Virus record (IMG/VR): IMGVR_UViG_3300023202_000247
Span: 124,001 to 188,000 of that record
DNA length: 64,000 nt
Reading direction: 5' to 3' (one strand)
The position numbers and the translations under genes were made by a program. Shown here piece after piece: positions 16,683 to 29,767 of this stretch; position 1 is the stretch's first letter; each line of letters starts with the position of its first letter. The notes under the pieces are model-generated. The model was not told the origin of the DNA, searched no databases, and saw only the letters and a list, made by a program, of their open reading frames with translations.

Positions 16683-16944
16683 AAATACAGATGAAGCTAG
16701 GCAAAGAGCAGTTAAATATCTAAAAAATTATCTTGATGAAATAGATGAGTGTAAAAAGTTAGAAGACTTTTTCATATTAGTTTTATCCGTGATGATTTAT
16801 TCCGAGTTGGTCCAAGCCCATTTCATAGATAGCATGGATGATAATGGCCAAGAACAATTGGCTTCTTTGAAAGATATGGCTGACCAAATCAAAAATGATG
16901 TTGTTGCTGGTTATCATAAGCAGGTAAATCAAAAACTTAATTGA
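16654..16944 (+). CDS. hypothetical protein
   Basis: 96-aa ORF in operon. Confidence 0.55.
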   Translation: MGSEEIDPSKNTDEARQRAVKYLKNYLDEIDECKKLEDFFILVLSVMIYSELVQAHFIDSMDDNGQEQLASLKDMADQIKNDVVAGYHKQVNQKLN

Positions 16945-17234
16945 AAGATTCACACATGAAGAAGTTTAAAAGTATCAAGCCGGAAACTGTTACTGTAAAG
17001 TTTGTTCCTTTAGAGGTAGAAGTTGATGGTGATCTTGAGAAGGCGTTGAGAAAATTCAAGATTTTATTTCAACGTGATCGAGTAATTGGACAGTTAAAAG
17101 AGCGCAGGTTTTATGAAAAACCATCGGAAAAGAAGCGGCGCAAGCGTAGAGAAGCGTATGGTCGTAGATTAAAAGATGAAATGATGCGTTCTGGAGAATG
17201 GGATAGGACTAGAAATAGAGAAGAAGATGACTGA
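16941..17234 (+). CDS. rpsU: ribosomal protein bS21
   Basis: DLEKALRKFK...LKERRFYEKPSEKKRRKRREA. Confidence 0.9.
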   Translation: MKDSHMKKFKSIKPETVTVKFVPLEVEVDGDLEKALRKFKILFQRDRVIGQLKERRFYEKPSEKKRRKRREAYGRRLKDEMMRSGEWDRTRNREEDD

Positions 17235-24374: not shown

Positions 24375-25397
24375 TTGTATTTAGAAGATAAAGAAGGAAA
24401 ACGGTACCCAGTGAAAACCCGAAGAATACATAAAGTAGCAAAAGCTAGAATAAACAATAGCGATTATAAAGAGAGCGATTATGTTGCAGCTGATCTTGGA
24501 AAGAAACACGTTTCTTCTGAAAAGTGTTCTAATGGAAAACTCTGGTCAGTTTCCAATGATACTGAGTATCGTGGTATTCAGAGAACATCTAAAAAATTAG
24601 AGCCCGGTGTTTATACGTTTCATAGAGATAATTATGGAACTAGTCTTTCTAGAGTTGAATCATTCAATATACACGATCTTATTCAGATAAAAGATACAGT
24701 TACTGATAGTATCATACAAGACATTGATATGTTTTGGGCATCCAAGGAAAAATTCGAGTCGTTCGGGTTTCCTTTTCGTCGTGGTATCTTGATGTATGGA
24801 CCACCCGGCTCTGGTAAATCATGTACGATAAAAATCATTATCAATCGTGTAATTGAAAAAGGAGGGGTTGCTATCAAATTTGAAAACCCTGAAGTATACA
24901 TGGATTGTATACGAATGGTTCGTTCCATCCAACCAGATGTCCCTGTTGTGGCTTTGATGGAAGATATTGATGATATTATTGACCGAGAGGGGGAGTCTAT
25001 GGTCTTAAATGTTTTAGATGGTGTTGAAGGTTATGAAAATATAGTTTACCTTGCAACAACAAACTATCCAGAGAATCTAGAGGGGCGCATCAAGAATAGA
25101 CCATCACGTTTTGATAGGAGGTACCATGTTGGGTATTTCAATGCTGAAGGACGCAAACAATTCATACATTATCTGTGCGAAAAACTAGAATCTAAAGATG
25201 TTGATACAAATATAAATATCGACAAATGGGTTGATGATACCAAAGATTGGACTCCAGCTCATATACAGGATTTGTTCATATCCGTACATTTGTTTGATCA
25301 TAAGTATGATGATACTGTTAGTTTGATCAATGATATGAGAACCAGTAAGATAAGTAGTGATGGTGATAAAGCTGTTCAAGTAGGGTTTGGGCGATGA
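24375..25397 (+). CDS. AAA+ ATPase
   Basis: RRGILMYGPPGSGKS, MEDID, ATTN, NRPSRFD. Confidence 0.88.
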   Translation: MYLEDKEGKRYPVKTRRIHKVAKARINNSDYKESDYVAADLGKKHVSSEKCSNGKLWSVSNDTEYRGIQRTSKKLEPGVYTFHRDNYGTSLSRVESFNIHDLIQIKDTVTDSIIQDIDMFWASKEKFESFGFPFRRGILMYGPPGSGKSCTIKIIINRVIEKGGVAIKFENPEVYMDCIRMVRSIQPDVPVVALMEDIDDIIDREGESMVLNVLDGVEGYENIVYLATTNYPENLEGRIKNRPSRFDRRYHVGYFNAEGRKQFIHYLCEKLESKDVDTNINIDKWVDDTKDWTPAHIQDLFISVHLFDHKYDDTVSLINDMRTSKISSDGDKAVQVGFGR

Positions 25398-25730
25398 GTC
25401 TAGAATCTTTCAAAAAAGAATTTGATTATCGTCATGATTTTGAAGATTCCGATCTTGATATTTTGAAAGAGCGTTGGCCCGGTGTAGAGTTTTCAAATAT
25501 TCCAGCTAGTTGGATAATTCCGATTGATGAGATGATGGCTTCATTTCGTTATAGTAATCCTGTCAAAAGAGTGTGGCAAAGTCATGGGCAGCTAATTGTC
25601 GAGGCAGATATATTAACTGATATAGAGATGAAAAAGATTGAGGCTTGTGAAAAAAAGCTGAAAAAAGTTGATATTGATTTGTATGAAATATTAGACTTAC
25701 AATAATGATTGCCGGAATGCCGAGGTAAAT

Positions 25731-26738
25731 ATGCAAACAAAATGGAAAGTGGCAATCGTTGCCGGAATAGTTGCCGTTATAGCGGCATTAGCTTTCATTA
25801 TAAAATATCAGCACGATATGCTTCAACGACAACATGCAATTGAAAAATCTGTTGTTGAGATGAAACTTTTGCAAAATGGTATCGTTCGTTCAGAGGCTAA
25901 ATATGCAACTAAAGATGATATTGAGCGTTTTGCAAAAGACCGTGGATTAGAATTAAAACCAATTAAAGATGATTTGAAAAAATTAGATGCTGAGCTGAAG
26001 GGTGTCAACTCATTACTTACGCGCACACCGGGTCGTGTTGTTGTGGGTGTACCGAGCACATCAATGACTCCGCGGCCAAGTACACCAGAGCCACCCAAGG
26101 CCAAGTGTCCTGATGGTAGTAGCGTTGAGTGCCCGAACCCAGATGAGTTTGGTTATCTTTCAGCAAAACAAAACTTGAGTTTGAATGAACCGTTTGCAGA
26201 TACAACGGAAGTTCCATTTGGTTCGGTTTCATTTAGTGCTTGGAAAGAAAAGCCGTGGGATGTTCGAGTATTACCACGAGATTATCGAGTAATGACCACA
26301 ATAAGCACAGATGAAGATGGCAGACATTTTGTTCACAATAAATTTACAATAACTACTGATGGTAAAGATTATACAATTCCGATTACCAAAAGTGAATTTG
26401 TAGAAAAATATCCAGTAGCAGAGTTTCGTTTTAGTCCAAGACTTTATCTTGGTGTAGATGGCGGTGTGTATTTCGACGGTGGTGCTGCGCTTGTTCCAAA
26501 CGCACAGGTTGCGTTGTTTTCTCATGGAAAAACAAAACTCAATCCTGATTGGACGTTTTTGGGATTAGGTTTTGGATATGCTACACAAGAAGAAGTTGTT
26601 ACGGGAGTTATCAGTCCAGTGAACTATAATATTGGAAGGCATTTACCATTAATGGAAAATTTATTTATCGGACCAACGTTCGGAATTACGATGAATGGAA
26701 ATTTATCTGTGATGGGAGGAATACGTGCTGGCCTATGA
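25731..26738 (+). CDS. membrane-anchored protein (N-terminal TM, coiled coil, Gly-rich beta C-terminus)
   Basis: hydrophobic residues 7-24; amphipathic beta strands at the C-terminus. Confidence 0.6.
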   Translation: MQTKWKVAIVAGIVAVIAALAFIIKYQHDMLQRQHAIEKSVVEMKLLQNGIVRSEAKYATKDDIERFAKDRGLELKPIKDDLKKLDAELKGVNSLLTRTPGRVVVGVPSTSMTPRPSTPEPPKAKCPDGSSVECPNPDEFGYLSAKQNLSLNEPFADTTEVPFGSVSFSAWKEKPWDVRVLPRDYRVMTTISTDEDGRHFVHNKFTITTDGKDYTIPITKSEFVEKYPVAEFRFSPRLYLGVDGGVYFDGGAALVPNAQVALFSHGKTKLNPDWTFLGLGFGYATQEEVVTGVISPVNYNIGRHLPLMENLFIGPTFGITMNGNLSVMGGIRAGL

Positions 26739-26777
26739 CTCTAGGCATAATTTTAGATATCGGTAGGACACGGAGGT

Positions 26778-26942
26778 ATGATGTTTCCTTTTAATAATAA
26801 GCCTAAAGATAAACAAAAAGTTCAGTACGAATACCTCTACATAGAAAAACATATTCCGCAAGATATACCACAACCTCCTCGTAAAAAAGAGGAAAATGAT
26901 GAACGTGGTGTAGTGGTAATAGATATCTATGGCGAAGACTAA
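26778..26942 (+). CDS. small hypothetical protein (54 aa; not in ORF track)
   Basis: GGAGG directly before two in-frame ATGs; MMFPFNNKPK...ERGVVVIDIYGED. Confidence 0.55.
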   Translation: MMFPFNNKPKDKQKVQYEYLYIEKHIPQDIPQPPRKKEENDERGVVVIDIYGED

Positions 26943-27237
26943 AAAGACGGGAAGACCCCGTAAGTTTTTTCTACCTGCTGATGACGATTTGCTAGTTGTG
27001 GACGCAAATTATTTCAAGCAGATTAAATCTCGGCATCATGCATTGGCATTGGGAATGTCTGTATATGCTGAATTACATGAAAGTTTATGTTTAGATGCAT
27101 TAGAAGGCGATGCATACGTTAAAACAATAAAGATTTCTGATGGTTTGGCACGAAGTCTCTATGAGTTGGATAGAAACTTTCCAAGTCTGATAGATGAAAT
27201 ACGACATATCAAATGTAAATGGGTTAATCAATGTTAA
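26929..27237 (+). CDS. hypothetical protein, possibly a degenerate IF3 N-terminal domain
   Basis: LLVVDAN...IKSRHHALALG and IKISDGLARSLYE weakly echo IF3-N; directly upstream of IF3-C. Confidence 0.35.
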   Translation: MAKTKKTGRPRKFFLPADDDLLVVDANYFKQIKSRHHALALGMSVYAELHESLCLDALEGDAYVKTIKISDGLARSLYELDRNFPSLIDEIRHIKCKWVNQC

Positions 27238-27506
27238 AAATTCATATTCGTCCAGGTACGAGCGAAAGCGCTCTAAAGGCAAAAGCTAGAAAAGCAACTA
27301 TATTATTAGAAGACAACGAAGAGATTTCTATCCTTCTTCAGTTTAGAAGGGGCGATATGAAAAATATAAAAATTGGTATGGTTGCAATGCAAAAGTTTTT
27401 GGACATGATTCTTGATGTTGATATGAAAAATGGCCCAGTAATTTCAATGAAAGATCGTACGATTACAGCTACGATTTCATCTAGAAGGCAATCAATTGCA
27501 TCATGA
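27231..27506 (+). CDS. infC: translation initiation factor IF3, C-terminal domain only
   Basis: IHIRPGT...KARKATILLEDNEEISILLQFRRGDM...IGM aligns with IKFRPGT...[26 protein letters not shown]...IGM. Confidence 0.75.
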   Translation: MLKIHIRPGTSESALKAKARKATILLEDNEEISILLQFRRGDMKNIKIGMVAMQKFLDMILDVDMKNGPVISMKDRTITATISSRRQSIAS

Positions 27507-28021
27507 TAGTTACTGATGAAAAACTTCTACGTGTAAAATGTGAAGATGTAAAACCTGAAGAAGTTGCCGAGTTGAAGCTAAAGTTGGAACAAGAGCTTAT
27601 AGCATCGGCGATGAAGGAGATGCCCGGTATAGGTTTGGCCGCACCACAAATCGGTATTCCCAAAAGAATGGCAATAGTTCGCTGCGGTTCTCAGTCAATA
27701 GACTTGGTAAACTGTAAGATAGAATCTGGTTATAACAAGGCTTTATTTGATGGTGAGGGGTGTCTTTCATATCCGGGAAGATATGAAAAAACATTTCGTT
27801 ATCAAGAAATATACGTGACGAACAATTTTGTCGAGCCTCATTCATTTACCGCTACTGGATTAGTAGCCGTAGTGGTCCAGCATGAATTGGATCATCTGGA
27901 CGGAATACTTTTGCCAGATGTTGCTTTAGCAAAACCAAAACAAAAAGTGAAGCTTCGGCCCAACGATAAATGTTCTTGTGGTTCTGGAAAGAAATATAAG
28001 AAATGTTGTGGATTACGATAA
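27503..28021 (+). CDS. def: peptide deformylase with C-terminal SEC-C motif
   Basis: GIGLAAPQIG, EGCLS, QHELDHLDG; RPNDKCSCGSGKKYKKCC. Confidence 0.93.
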   Translation: MIVTDEKLLRVKCEDVKPEEVAELKLKLEQELIASAMKEMPGIGLAAPQIGIPKRMAIVRCGSQSIDLVNCKIESGYNKALFDGEGCLSYPGRYEKTFRYQEIYVTNNFVEPHSFTATGLVAVVVQHELDHLDGILLPDVALAKPKQKVKLRPNDKCSCGSGKKYKKCCGLR

Positions 28022-28310
28022 TTGAGACGCCTAAATGCCCAAAATTACTGCCTTAGAATAAGTGTTTTAGTTCTAGGCATAACCCAACTATAATGATGTG
28101 ACTTATGGATCAGAAAGACGTAGAAAAGATAACCATGTTAGTTACAGATCTCATTTTGAGGTTATCTGTAATGGAAGATATCTTAAAAGAAAAAGGTTTA
28201 TTGGAAGAGCAGGACTATGTACAGAGATTGGAAATCAAAAGCCGCGCAATGTCCGATCAACTTCGCGATGCCTTGGGCAAAACCGATCCATAGTAAGTTG
28301 CATTTAATTT

Positions 28311-28655
28311 ATGAGCTTGGTAAACTTTACCAGGCTCATGTGTTTTTGTACTACTTTAAAAATGGAGATGATAATGGATTTTAATGGTTTGTGTGCTGTA
28401 AAGTTTGGAGCAGAATGGTGTGGTCCTTGTAAAATGTTGGAACCAAAGTTGAATAAACTTGGTGAAGAATATCCAGATGTTAATTTTGTTAGTATCAATG
28501 TGGACGACGATCCAGCTTTAGCGAAAAAATTTCAAATCAGAAGCTTACCGACTGTTATATTACTAAACAACGGAGATGAGGTGACTCGTGTCATCGGAGC
28601 ATCTCTGATAACACCTTTGAGAAAAGCTTTTAACGAATTTCTCAAAGCAGCTTAA
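28311..28655 (+). CDS. trxA: thioredoxin
   Basis: WCGPC, IRSLPT; true start probably about 50 nt downstream. Confidence 0.9.
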   Translation: MSLVNFTRLMCFCTTLKMEMIMDFNGLCAVKFGAEWCGPCKMLEPKLNKLGEEYPDVNFVSINVDDDPALAKKFQIRSLPTVILLNNGDEVTRVIGASLITPLRKAFNEFLKAA

Positions 28656-28670
28656 TGATAAGGATGTAAG

Positions 28671-28979
28671 ATGGCAACAACAACTAGTACTAAGAAAAAG
28701 AAGAAAAATTTTGCTGATGCTGTTTGGGACCAAATTGAAAATCAAACTCTAGAACTTTTTGGATTACCAAATCAATTGGTATCTCATAATGTTAAAAGGG
28801 CTAAGATAACACCTGAATTGCTTCATCTACAGCTAAAGTCTCAAGCTGTTCTTCTTCCACTAGAAGAGATTCTAAAGACAATTGAATATGAAGAGGGAAA
28901 GACATATGAAATTGAGCATCAAATGAGATATATCGTTGTTAGAGAAGTTGAAAAACAAGAAATTAAGAATCTGACTTAA
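28671..28979 (+). CDS. hypothetical protein
   Basis: 102-aa ORF. Confidence 0.6.
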   Translation: MATTTSTKKKKKNFADAVWDQIENQTLELFGLPNQLVSHNVKRAKITPELLHLQLKSQAVLLPLEEILKTIEYEEGKTYEIEHQMRYIVVREVEKQEIKNLT

Positions 28980-28982
28980 AAT

Positions 28983-29408
28983 GTGGAAGAGAATCTATAT
29001 TTAGTTATGGGTTGTTGGGGTCGTCAGGATGATGGTTTCATCAGCTGTCCCAGTGTTGAAAACAGAATCTTGCATATCCACAGCGGTTTGGAAAATTATG
29101 ACGCTATCATGGATTACCTTGATAGCGTCAGACTTTTTGATAGACCTCTTTATGATAACAATGCTATAAGGCATCTTATTTATAATATGCAAGACAAGTA
29201 TTTGGAACAGCTCAGGCCGATTTGGAACCCCAAGAGGTATGACCTATTAGAAAAGTTTATTGTAAGCCACAAAAGCTGTGGTGTATACGTAAAGTTGTGT
29301 TTAATCAATCCCGAATTGGAGCCAAAAAAGGAAGAACGGAGCGATGATGAAGCTGTTTTCGTTCAAGCTGCGCCAAATTTGAAGCTTGTTGATGATACAT
29401 ACAGCTAA
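28983..29408 (+). CDS. hypothetical protein
   Basis: 141-aa ORF. Confidence 0.6.
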   Translation: MEENLYLVMGCWGRQDDGFISCPSVENRILHIHSGLENYDAIMDYLDSVRLFDRPLYDNNAIRHLIYNMQDKYLEQLRPIWNPKRYDLLEKFIVSHKSCGVYVKLCLINPELEPKKEERSDDEAVFVQAAPNLKLVDDTYS

Positions 29409-29428
29409 TTACATCGCATACTTTCATG
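29407..29428 (+). promoter_or_regulatory. putative late promoter motif
   Basis: AATTA-catc-GCAT-actttc-ATG. Confidence 0.5.
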
Positions 29429-29767
29429 AGTACAGTTACAGAAGACGCCTATGAAAGACTCAAAAAAATGCTTGATGGCAAAGAAAAAGAAATCAAGTAT
29501 GTAATGTTAACTTTTTCAGAGAAAGATAAATATGAGATTTATCAACTGATAAAGAATTCTTTGATTAGGCATGCAGATGTTCCAGATTATCACGCAGATA
29601 TATTAAGCGATCATTTACTTACTAGTGTTTTGGGCATATTTGACCTGAAACAAAAGAAACATGCTAACAATATAGCCCGTCAAGGTGGTAAGGTATTGTC
29701 TGAAGAAGAGGTAGAAAAGCAAGAGACCGGAAAGCTTTCTCCTATGTTTTCTCGTGTTGATGAATAA
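29426..29767 (+). CDS. hypothetical protein
   Basis: 113-aa ORF, no SD, preceded by the motif. Confidence 0.6.
   Translation: MSTVTEDAYERLKKMLDGKEKEIKYVMLTFSEKDKYEIYQLIKNSLIRHADVPDYHADILSDHLLTSVLGIFDLKQKKHANNIARQGGKVLSEEEVEKQETGKLSPMFSRVDE

Follow-up and report, generated by a model that had tools for sequence, protein, structure and literature searches.

A stand-alone, highly diverged C-terminal domain of IF3 encoded next to peptide deformylase in a large phage

A short gene in a phage genome raises the question of whether translation initiation factor IF3 has here been split into two adjacent genes or whether its C-terminal domain stands alone, two possibilities that the preliminary description of this locus had placed side by side. 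The gene, referred to as ORF91, lies in a 64-kb window, meaning the whole stretch of DNA that was analysed (bases 124001-188000 of the 321,461-bp IMG/VR virus record IMGVR_UViG_3300023202_000247), which has a GC content of 40.6% and carries nearly all of its genes on one strand. A blastn search of cultured phages with 5 kb of the locus gave zero matches. The features of the locus are:

25731..26738, + strand: ORF335, conserved, function unassigned, with a hydrophobic N-terminus; upstream synteny anchor of the module
26778..26942, + strand: ORF54, a small conserved ORF overlapping the start of ORF102 by 14 nt
26929..27237, + strand: ORF102, 102 aa, from an uncharacterised family of its own of ~100 aa; not IF3-N
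27216-27218 and 27225-27227, + strand: two TAA stops in the frame of ORF91, read directly, which bar an N-terminal extension of ORF91
27231..27237, + strand: ATGTTAA overlap, the start of ORF91 on the stop of ORF102 (GTGTTAA in relatives)
27231..27506, + strand: ORF91, 91 aa, a stand-alone, highly diverged IF3 C-terminal domain
27503..28021, + strand: peptide deformylase (PDF), 172 aa, SEC-C zinc motif at the C-terminus; starts on the stop of ORF91 (ATGA)
after PDF and before the hairpin, + strand: ORF62, 62 aa, a member of the same presumed unit
28310..28340, + strand: strong terminator-like hairpin (14 pairs, then a run of T); the ORF54-ORF102-ORF91-PDF-ORF62 unit probably ends here

Because successive genes overlap head to tail (ORF54/ORF102 by 14 nt, ORF102/ORF91 by 7 nt, ORF91/PDF by 4 nt) and a hairpin follows downstream, they look like one translationally coupled unit, and ORF54 through ORF62 probably form a single transcription unit that ends at this hairpin. 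The ATGTTAA overlap is the translational-coupling junction between ORF102 and ORF91. Terminator-like sites numbered 10 against 3.1 expected, and a sigma-70 promoter scan returned sites no more numerous than in shuffles. At the upstream edge of the module, which it marks, ORF335 is without a family match; large phages in IMG/VR (200-460 kb) encode relatives of it with 42-54% identity. The ORF54 slot holds a 45-58-aa ORF in seven related contigs, a correspondence of position. At the other end, the hairpin overlaps the first listed start of a thioredoxin ORF (28311); the thioredoxin of relatives is called shorter (93 aa), so the true start probably lies 3' of the hairpin.

The product of ORF91 consists solely of an IF3 C-domain. 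Pfam IF3_C (PF00707) matches it over model positions 6-84 of 86 with E=2.9e-6 and 27.6 bits, below the gathering cut-off of 34.8, and the PHROG family phrog_9787, 'translation initiation factor', matches with its C half only (profile positions 87-166 of 168, E=1.8e-8). Residues 95-155 of E. coli IF3 align with it (E=7.8e-5), and a custom phage IF3-C HMM finds it with E=8e-10. The protein is basic (pI 10.1), and its AlphaFold model has a pLDDT of 89.6 and the order beta-alpha-beta-alpha-beta-beta. All of the 19 best PDB matches to the model are IF3 C-domains; the 16 of these with E <= 0.001 have TM scores of 0.59-0.81 (14 of them at least 0.73), and the top ten superpose with an rmsd of 1.5-2.5 A. 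An IF3-C alignment went into building the model, which makes this fold match supportive and not independent. Alba- and SpoVS-like nucleic-acid binders, which belong to the same fold class, rank lower in the list. The alignment of 27231..27506 with the C domain only, reported in the preliminary description, is thus reproduced by Pfam, by phrog_9787, by E. coli IF3 and by the model.

The remainder of the factor is missing. Pfam IF3_N (PF05198) finds no match at E<=10 in ORF91, in ORF102 or in the rest of the 321-kb genome, and a custom IF3-N HMM that matches the relatives has no match in the window. The lysine-rich inter-domain linker is likewise missing from ORF91, the protein beginning at the first C-domain strand with stops upstream. 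The two in-frame stops noted earlier, at 27216 and 27225, are both TAA, and since only TCAATGT separates the last of them from the stop of ORF102, there is no -1 slippery heptamer (X XXY YYZ). The stops and the absence of such a heptamer confirm the earlier rejection of a frameshift fusion. A free IF3-C domain, the second of the two possibilities, is supported, as ORF91 cannot be extended upstream, is intact in three assemblies and has no IF3_N partner in the 321-kb genome. A search of IMG/VR loci for relatives of ORF91 alone, or of ORF102 alone, found none.

The first possibility, a split IF3, depends on ORF102 being a degenerate IF3-N that would work in trans with ORF91. The preliminary description had seen a weak echo of IF3-N in the upstream ORF, and hhalign reproduces that alignment between the ORF102 family and IF3-N, over 41 columns covering the same stretch, but not as a significant one (probability 3.8%, P=0.011); the echo exists but is indistinguishable from chance. 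In favour of a split, the aligned part comprises the hairpin and the start of a helix of ORF102, the order of elements (beta-beta-alpha-beta-beta-alpha) is presumably that of IF3-N plus linker, and the two genes overlap and are coupled. Against it, no member of the ORF102 family matches Pfam IF3_N. This family was assembled by a HMMER scan of 1.84 billion cluster representatives, which gave 47 relatives of ORF102, 46 of 75-121 aa and one of 167 aa; compared with Pfam, the 47 members have no IF3_N match at E<=1 and match no other family consistently. ORF102 itself is without a match in Pfam, even at E<=1, and in PHROG. The profile comparison of both ORFs with IF3_N and IF3_C that had been suggested therefore came out for one of them: ORF91 matches IF3_C, and ORF102 has no IF3_N match.

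The predicted structure of ORF102 also differs from that of IF3-N. The IF3-N fold is one helix on a four-stranded sheet. In the ORF102 model (pLDDT 89.7), a basic tail and a beta-hairpin are accompanied by four helices, one short and three long. Foldseek found nothing significant for it in the PDB, no IF3 chain occurs among the 50 best rows of Foldseek, of an exhaustive VIA-align search or of a second look with VIA-align, and an ESM Atlas fold search and an atlas feature search gave no usable match. Ribosomal protein uL29, rather than IF3-N, occupies the top rows: uL29 chains head both VIA-align lists with Z 5.8-6.7, a range below the trustworthy level for helical hairpins, so that the likeness is a lead only. 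Residues 22-86 of the model superpose on nearly the whole of uL29 (57-62 residues, rmsd ~2 A); unlike uL29, ORF102 has an extra basic tail, beta-hairpin and C-terminal helix, and Pfam gives no Ribosomal_L29 sequence match for it. A complex prediction for ORF91 and ORF102 scored 0.00, which is no evidence either way.

What decides the matter is gene order in six lineages that carry an ORF102 homologue:

L005: ORF102 homologue of 106 aa, IF3 of 185 aa, a 57-aa ORF, PDF
L006: ORF102 homologue of 167 aa, IF3 of 182 aa; the contig ends before any PDF
L091: ORF102 homologue of 102 aa, an unrelated 86-aa ORF, IF3 of 175 aa, PDF
P0009 contig: ORF102 homologue of 106 aa, IF3 of 188 aa, PDF
L092: ORF102 homologue of 102 aa, IF3 of 191 aa, PDF
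L093: ORF102 homologue of 105 aa, IF3 of 190 aa, PDF

In all six, the IF3 (175-191 aa) contains both Pfam domains. Four of them (L091, the P0009 contig, L092 and L093) have the same flanks as the window: upstream a protein of 333-347 aa and an ORF of 45-58 aa, downstream a thioredoxin. The contigs of L005 and L006 are short and do not show the outer neighbours. Because an ORF102 homologue adjoins an IF3 that has its own N domain, ORF102 cannot be that N domain; it is an independent conserved neighbour gene and not the missing half of IF3. Synteny in relatives, which had been proposed as a check, hence contradicts two adjacent half-genes, the different fold and the lack of significant IF3_N similarity also speak against them, and we consider a split IF3 very improbable. 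As for the wider family (homologues P0004-P0050), its members are always found just upstream of IF3, IF3-C or PDF.

A further explanation for a lone C domain would be that an indel introduced in assembly or sequencing has broken up a single gene. Artefacts of this type do exist elsewhere, as in L009, where the cellular infC of a polished long-read assembly is frameshifted; none was found for ORF102 and ORF91. Two Logan assemblies from other samples (L002 and L003) have the same four-gene layout with ORF91 at 86-87% amino acid identity, and a 743-column DNA alignment of the window and these relatives contains zero indels. ORF91 begins with ATG in the window and GTG in L002 and L003, with the overlap on the ORF102 stop kept. 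An identical two-gene layout without indels in two other assemblies is not a sequencing error. With this frame structure common to three assemblies from different samples (86-100% amino acid identity), and with ORF102 forming an independent family, the chance of such an artefact is negligible.

The same comparison shows how the genes evolve. By the Nei-Gojobori method, applied to the window and L002 and thus effectively to one pairwise comparison, dN/dS is 0.06 for ORF102, 0.05 for PDF, 0.07 for ORF335 and 0.25 for ORF91. The ORF91 value is ~4-5 times that of the neighbouring genes and above that of PDF (P=0.006); it is also below 1 (P=0.0015, an excess of synonymous change in this one pairwise comparison), and most of the amino acid changes separating the two sub-lineages exchange I, V, L and M for one another. 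ORF102 and ORF91 are real genes under purifying selection, with ORF91 the less constrained of the two. Over 25330..29550, divergence between the window and L002 is patchy (76-100% identity per 90-nt stretch, with a block of 94-99% at 26408-26917) and ignores gene borders, a pattern that points to mosaic recombination. That ORF91 diverges little at synonymous sites could have hinted at an RNA element, an idea set aside in favour of this region-wide patchiness.

The origin of ORF91 emerges from the relatives in which its slot is filled differently. Full IF3 occupies this slot in 12 related lineages, namely the six listed above and six contigs (L007, L011, L012/L095, L020, L023 and L096) added by a further survey that used PDF (80 IMG/VR loci) and ORF335 (6 loci) as anchors. 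In the syntenic contigs carrying IF3, the position of the full-length gene, between the ORF102 family or ORF335/ORF54 on one side and PDF on the other, is that of ORF91. No C-domain-only IF3 was present among the surveyed PDF- and ORF335-anchored loci. IF3 is absent in L004, L097, L099, L100 and most PDF-bearing relatives, and is dispensable in this phage group. Compared with the C-domain part of syntenic full-length IF3s, ORF91 is 25-31% identical, and as the alignment starts at the first C-domain strand (MLKIHIRP against VKEIKFRP), the N domain and linker are cleanly missing. Maximum-likelihood analysis of C domains separates the other database IF3s, with 98/99 support, from a phage side that includes the ORF91 pair, which sits on a stem branch of ~3.5 substitutions per site; the tree is based on 88 columns, and the exact sister group of ORF91 is beyond its resolution. 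ORF91 is the positional orthologue of a full-length phage IF3 whose N domain and linker were lost in the lineage of the window. The ancestral module comprised a ~335-aa protein, a ~52-aa ORF, (a member of the ORF102 family), a full-length IF3, PDF with SEC-C, a small ORF and thioredoxin.

A candidate orthologue of ORF91 in L091, the 86-aa ORF that separates IF3 from the ORF102 homologue there, proved unrelated when examined. This ORF (L091:3303-3563) and the 57-aa ORF of L005 (L005:1579-1752) are small, unrelated insertions without a family match, the former in the gap between the ORF102 homologue and IF3 and the latter in that between IF3 and PDF; the IF3/PDF module tolerates insertions.

Loss of the N domain was accompanied by marked change in what remained. 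Across 33 other IF3-C domains, 22 positions reach a conservation of at least 85%, and ORF91 keeps 8 of them; by a second count, ORF91 and its relatives keep 8-9 of 25 positions where 18-23 are kept by syntenic full-length phage IF3s, which indicates a burst specific to the lineage without the N domain. In the numbering of E. coli, taken from the alignment of ORF91 with E. coli IF3, the residues R99, P100, T102, K110, F130 and G141 are kept; the changes include E95K, K97H, F98I, D106A, G132R, R133G, E134D and a Gly near 167 to Asp, the invariant G-R-E motif (132-134) reading R-G-D in ORF91.

This divergence gives weight to two serious rivals concerning what ORF91 does. According to the first, ORF91 is a decaying remnant, an IF3-C stub without a function of its own and a mere spacer that couples translation of ORF102 to that of PDF. 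The loss of 14 of the 22 conserved positions, the very long branch, the raised dN/dS and the many relatives without IF3 all fit such decay. A decaying gene would not be expected, however, to show a dN/dS of 0.25, significantly below 1, nor a 91-codon frame that is intact in two diverged sub-lineages, without indels and with its start codon replaced and not lost; the conservative nature of the changes and the confidently folded model argue in the same direction, and we regard this explanation as unlikely. The second rival, ranked behind the first, is that the IF3-C fold was retooled for an RNA or protein target other than the canonical 30S site. It is consistent with a long stem branch followed by purifying selection, with replacement of the invariant GRE motif and several surface positions, and with the occurrence of the Alba- and SpoVS-like nucleic-acid binders in the same fold class. 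It accounts less well for the kept linkage and coupling to PDF in a translation module and for the kept equivalents of R99, P100, T102 and K110, and no alternative partner was identified; recruitment to a new target is accordingly also judged improbable.

Given the N-terminal truncation, the conservation under selection, the IF3-C fold and the translational coupling to ORF102 and PDF, the reading that we favour, on balance and with only modest assurance, is that ORF91 is a phage IF3 minus its N domain and linker, with ORF102 an independent neighbour, and that it most likely still acts at the 30S site of IF3-C. ORF91 would dock on the platform site that IF3-C occupies on the 30S subunit and would there keep the subunits apart; without the domain that inspects the initiator tRNA and the start codon, it may behave as a low-fidelity or competing IF3 during infection. 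The common layout in three assemblies, selection, the IF3-C fold, the basic character of the protein and the kept residues count in favour of this reading. Counting against it are the lost conserved positions, the ~3.5 stem branch, a dN/dS higher than that of PDF, the Pfam score below cut-off and the dispensability of IF3.

Work on E. coli indicates what such a protein could do. There, the C domain alone sustains growth and carries IF3's anti-association activity, the strain living on it is slow-growing and shows more initiation at AUU and AUA, and leaderless initiation is opposed by IF3 (PMC9723500). The preliminary description had suggested that an unlinked or degenerate IF3 could relax start selection in favour of leaderless phage mRNAs; the suggestion is compatible with these data for IF3 lacking the N domain and is weakened by the divergence of ORF91. 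In its fullest form, the proposal would be that the phage makes a proofreading-less IF3 which takes the host 30S site, frees subunits and relaxes initiation at non-canonical, weak-SD or leaderless starts, thereby favouring phage messages, within a take-over module to which PDF with SEC-C, a phage bS21 and the ORF102 family, perhaps binding the ribosome as uL29-like proteins, would also belong. As most conserved residues of canonical IF3-C are gone from ORF91, this elaboration is rated as doubtful, below both of the rivals above.

Other genes of the phage are also directed at translation. PDF is well supported (Pfam Pep_deformylase E=4.4e-29, SEC-C E=2.9e-6), and its order downstream of IF3 is conserved in relatives. 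It ends in a SecA-type SEC-C zinc motif (CSCGSGKKYKKCCG), a fusion that is conserved in related phages (L002, L005, L007, L092 and many IMG/VR loci); the motif suggests a non-standard docking of PDF, perhaps to the ribosome or a chaperone. A bS21 homologue is encoded at 16941..17234 of the window (+ strand; Pfam Ribosomal_S21 E=1e-15, above cut-off), ~10 kb upstream of IF3-C/PDF, and the phage carries at least three ribosome-directed genes. IF1 was looked for in the phage and not found. The sole tRNA of the 321-kb record (G000:C1:87246-87319, outside the window) has the anticodon CAT and a paired G1-C72 end, and is without three consecutive G-C pairs. Such pairs are a feature of initiator tRNA, so this tRNA is of the elongator Met or Ile2 type and not an initiator. 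The genome-wide Shine-Dalgarno signal is weak, with AGGA in 14% of upstream regions against a background of 4%, a G peak of only 39% at -8 and A-rich positions from -4 to -1; with gene starts called crudely, this is a hint only on the initiation mode of the host.

The locus deserves attention for several reasons. The relatives assembled here provide an unusually clean comparison set, in which the same slot is occupied, among close relatives, by a complete IF3, by its C domain alone or by neither. If ORF91 binds the 30S subunit, it would be a ready-made tool for parting the anti-association role of IF3 from its fidelity role, and a candidate viral mechanism for loosening host start-site selection. 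The work on ORF102 in addition defines a conserved, uncharacterised family of ~100 aa that accompanies IF3 and peptide deformylase.

Among known systems, the closest are the IF3 proteins of other phages. IF3 genes are documented in huge phages (PMC7162821, PMC7824862), which encode IF1, IF3 and PDF (PMC7162821), so that it is the C-domain-only form that is new here. IF3 is annotated in the cultured Agrobacterium phage Atu_ph07, Sinorhizobium phage Phosso, Klebsiella phage RaK2 and Escherichia phage EJP2, and 63 of the 67 phage records matching a full-length IF3 query cover at least 80% of it. In the literature and loci searched, no phage with a C-domain-only IF3 was described or sampled beyond the ORF91 lineage. 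ORF91 shares with full-length phage IF3 (phrog_9787) the C-domain fold, the gene slot and the linkage to PDF, and differs in the absent N domain and linker, the low count of kept positions and the very long branch.

With bacterial IF3 (InfC), ORF91 has in common the homology of the C domain and its fold (TM 0.73-0.81); it differs in having no N domain or linker, in lying outside an infC-rpmI-rplT operon and in scoring below the Pfam gathering cut-off. Cellular 'IF3_C-only' proteins were considered as precedents and rejected, as both of the database calls inspected (the others being 104-123 aa) are artefacts in infC-rpmI-rplT operons: L009:3795-4264 is the frameshifted infC mentioned above, and L010:1009-1479 has an N domain in frame upstream of a miscalled start. 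The unusual start codons of infC fit the latter miscall.

The nearest functional counterpart is the E. coli infC delta-55 strain, or isolated IF3-C (PMC9723500 and work cited there), in which IF3 is likewise cut to its C domain. This form binds the 30S subunit and keeps anti-association and growth, with fidelity for the start codon and initiator tRNA lost (PMC9723500). It is engineered and otherwise canonical in sequence, and the linker and some of the N domain region are still present in it. ORF91, unlike this form, is natural and much diverged, and is made beside the intact IF3 of the host, so that any effect would come from competition. The truncation in the lineage of ORF91 arose naturally and has its engineered parallel in the E. 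coli strain that lives on the C domain of IF3 alone.
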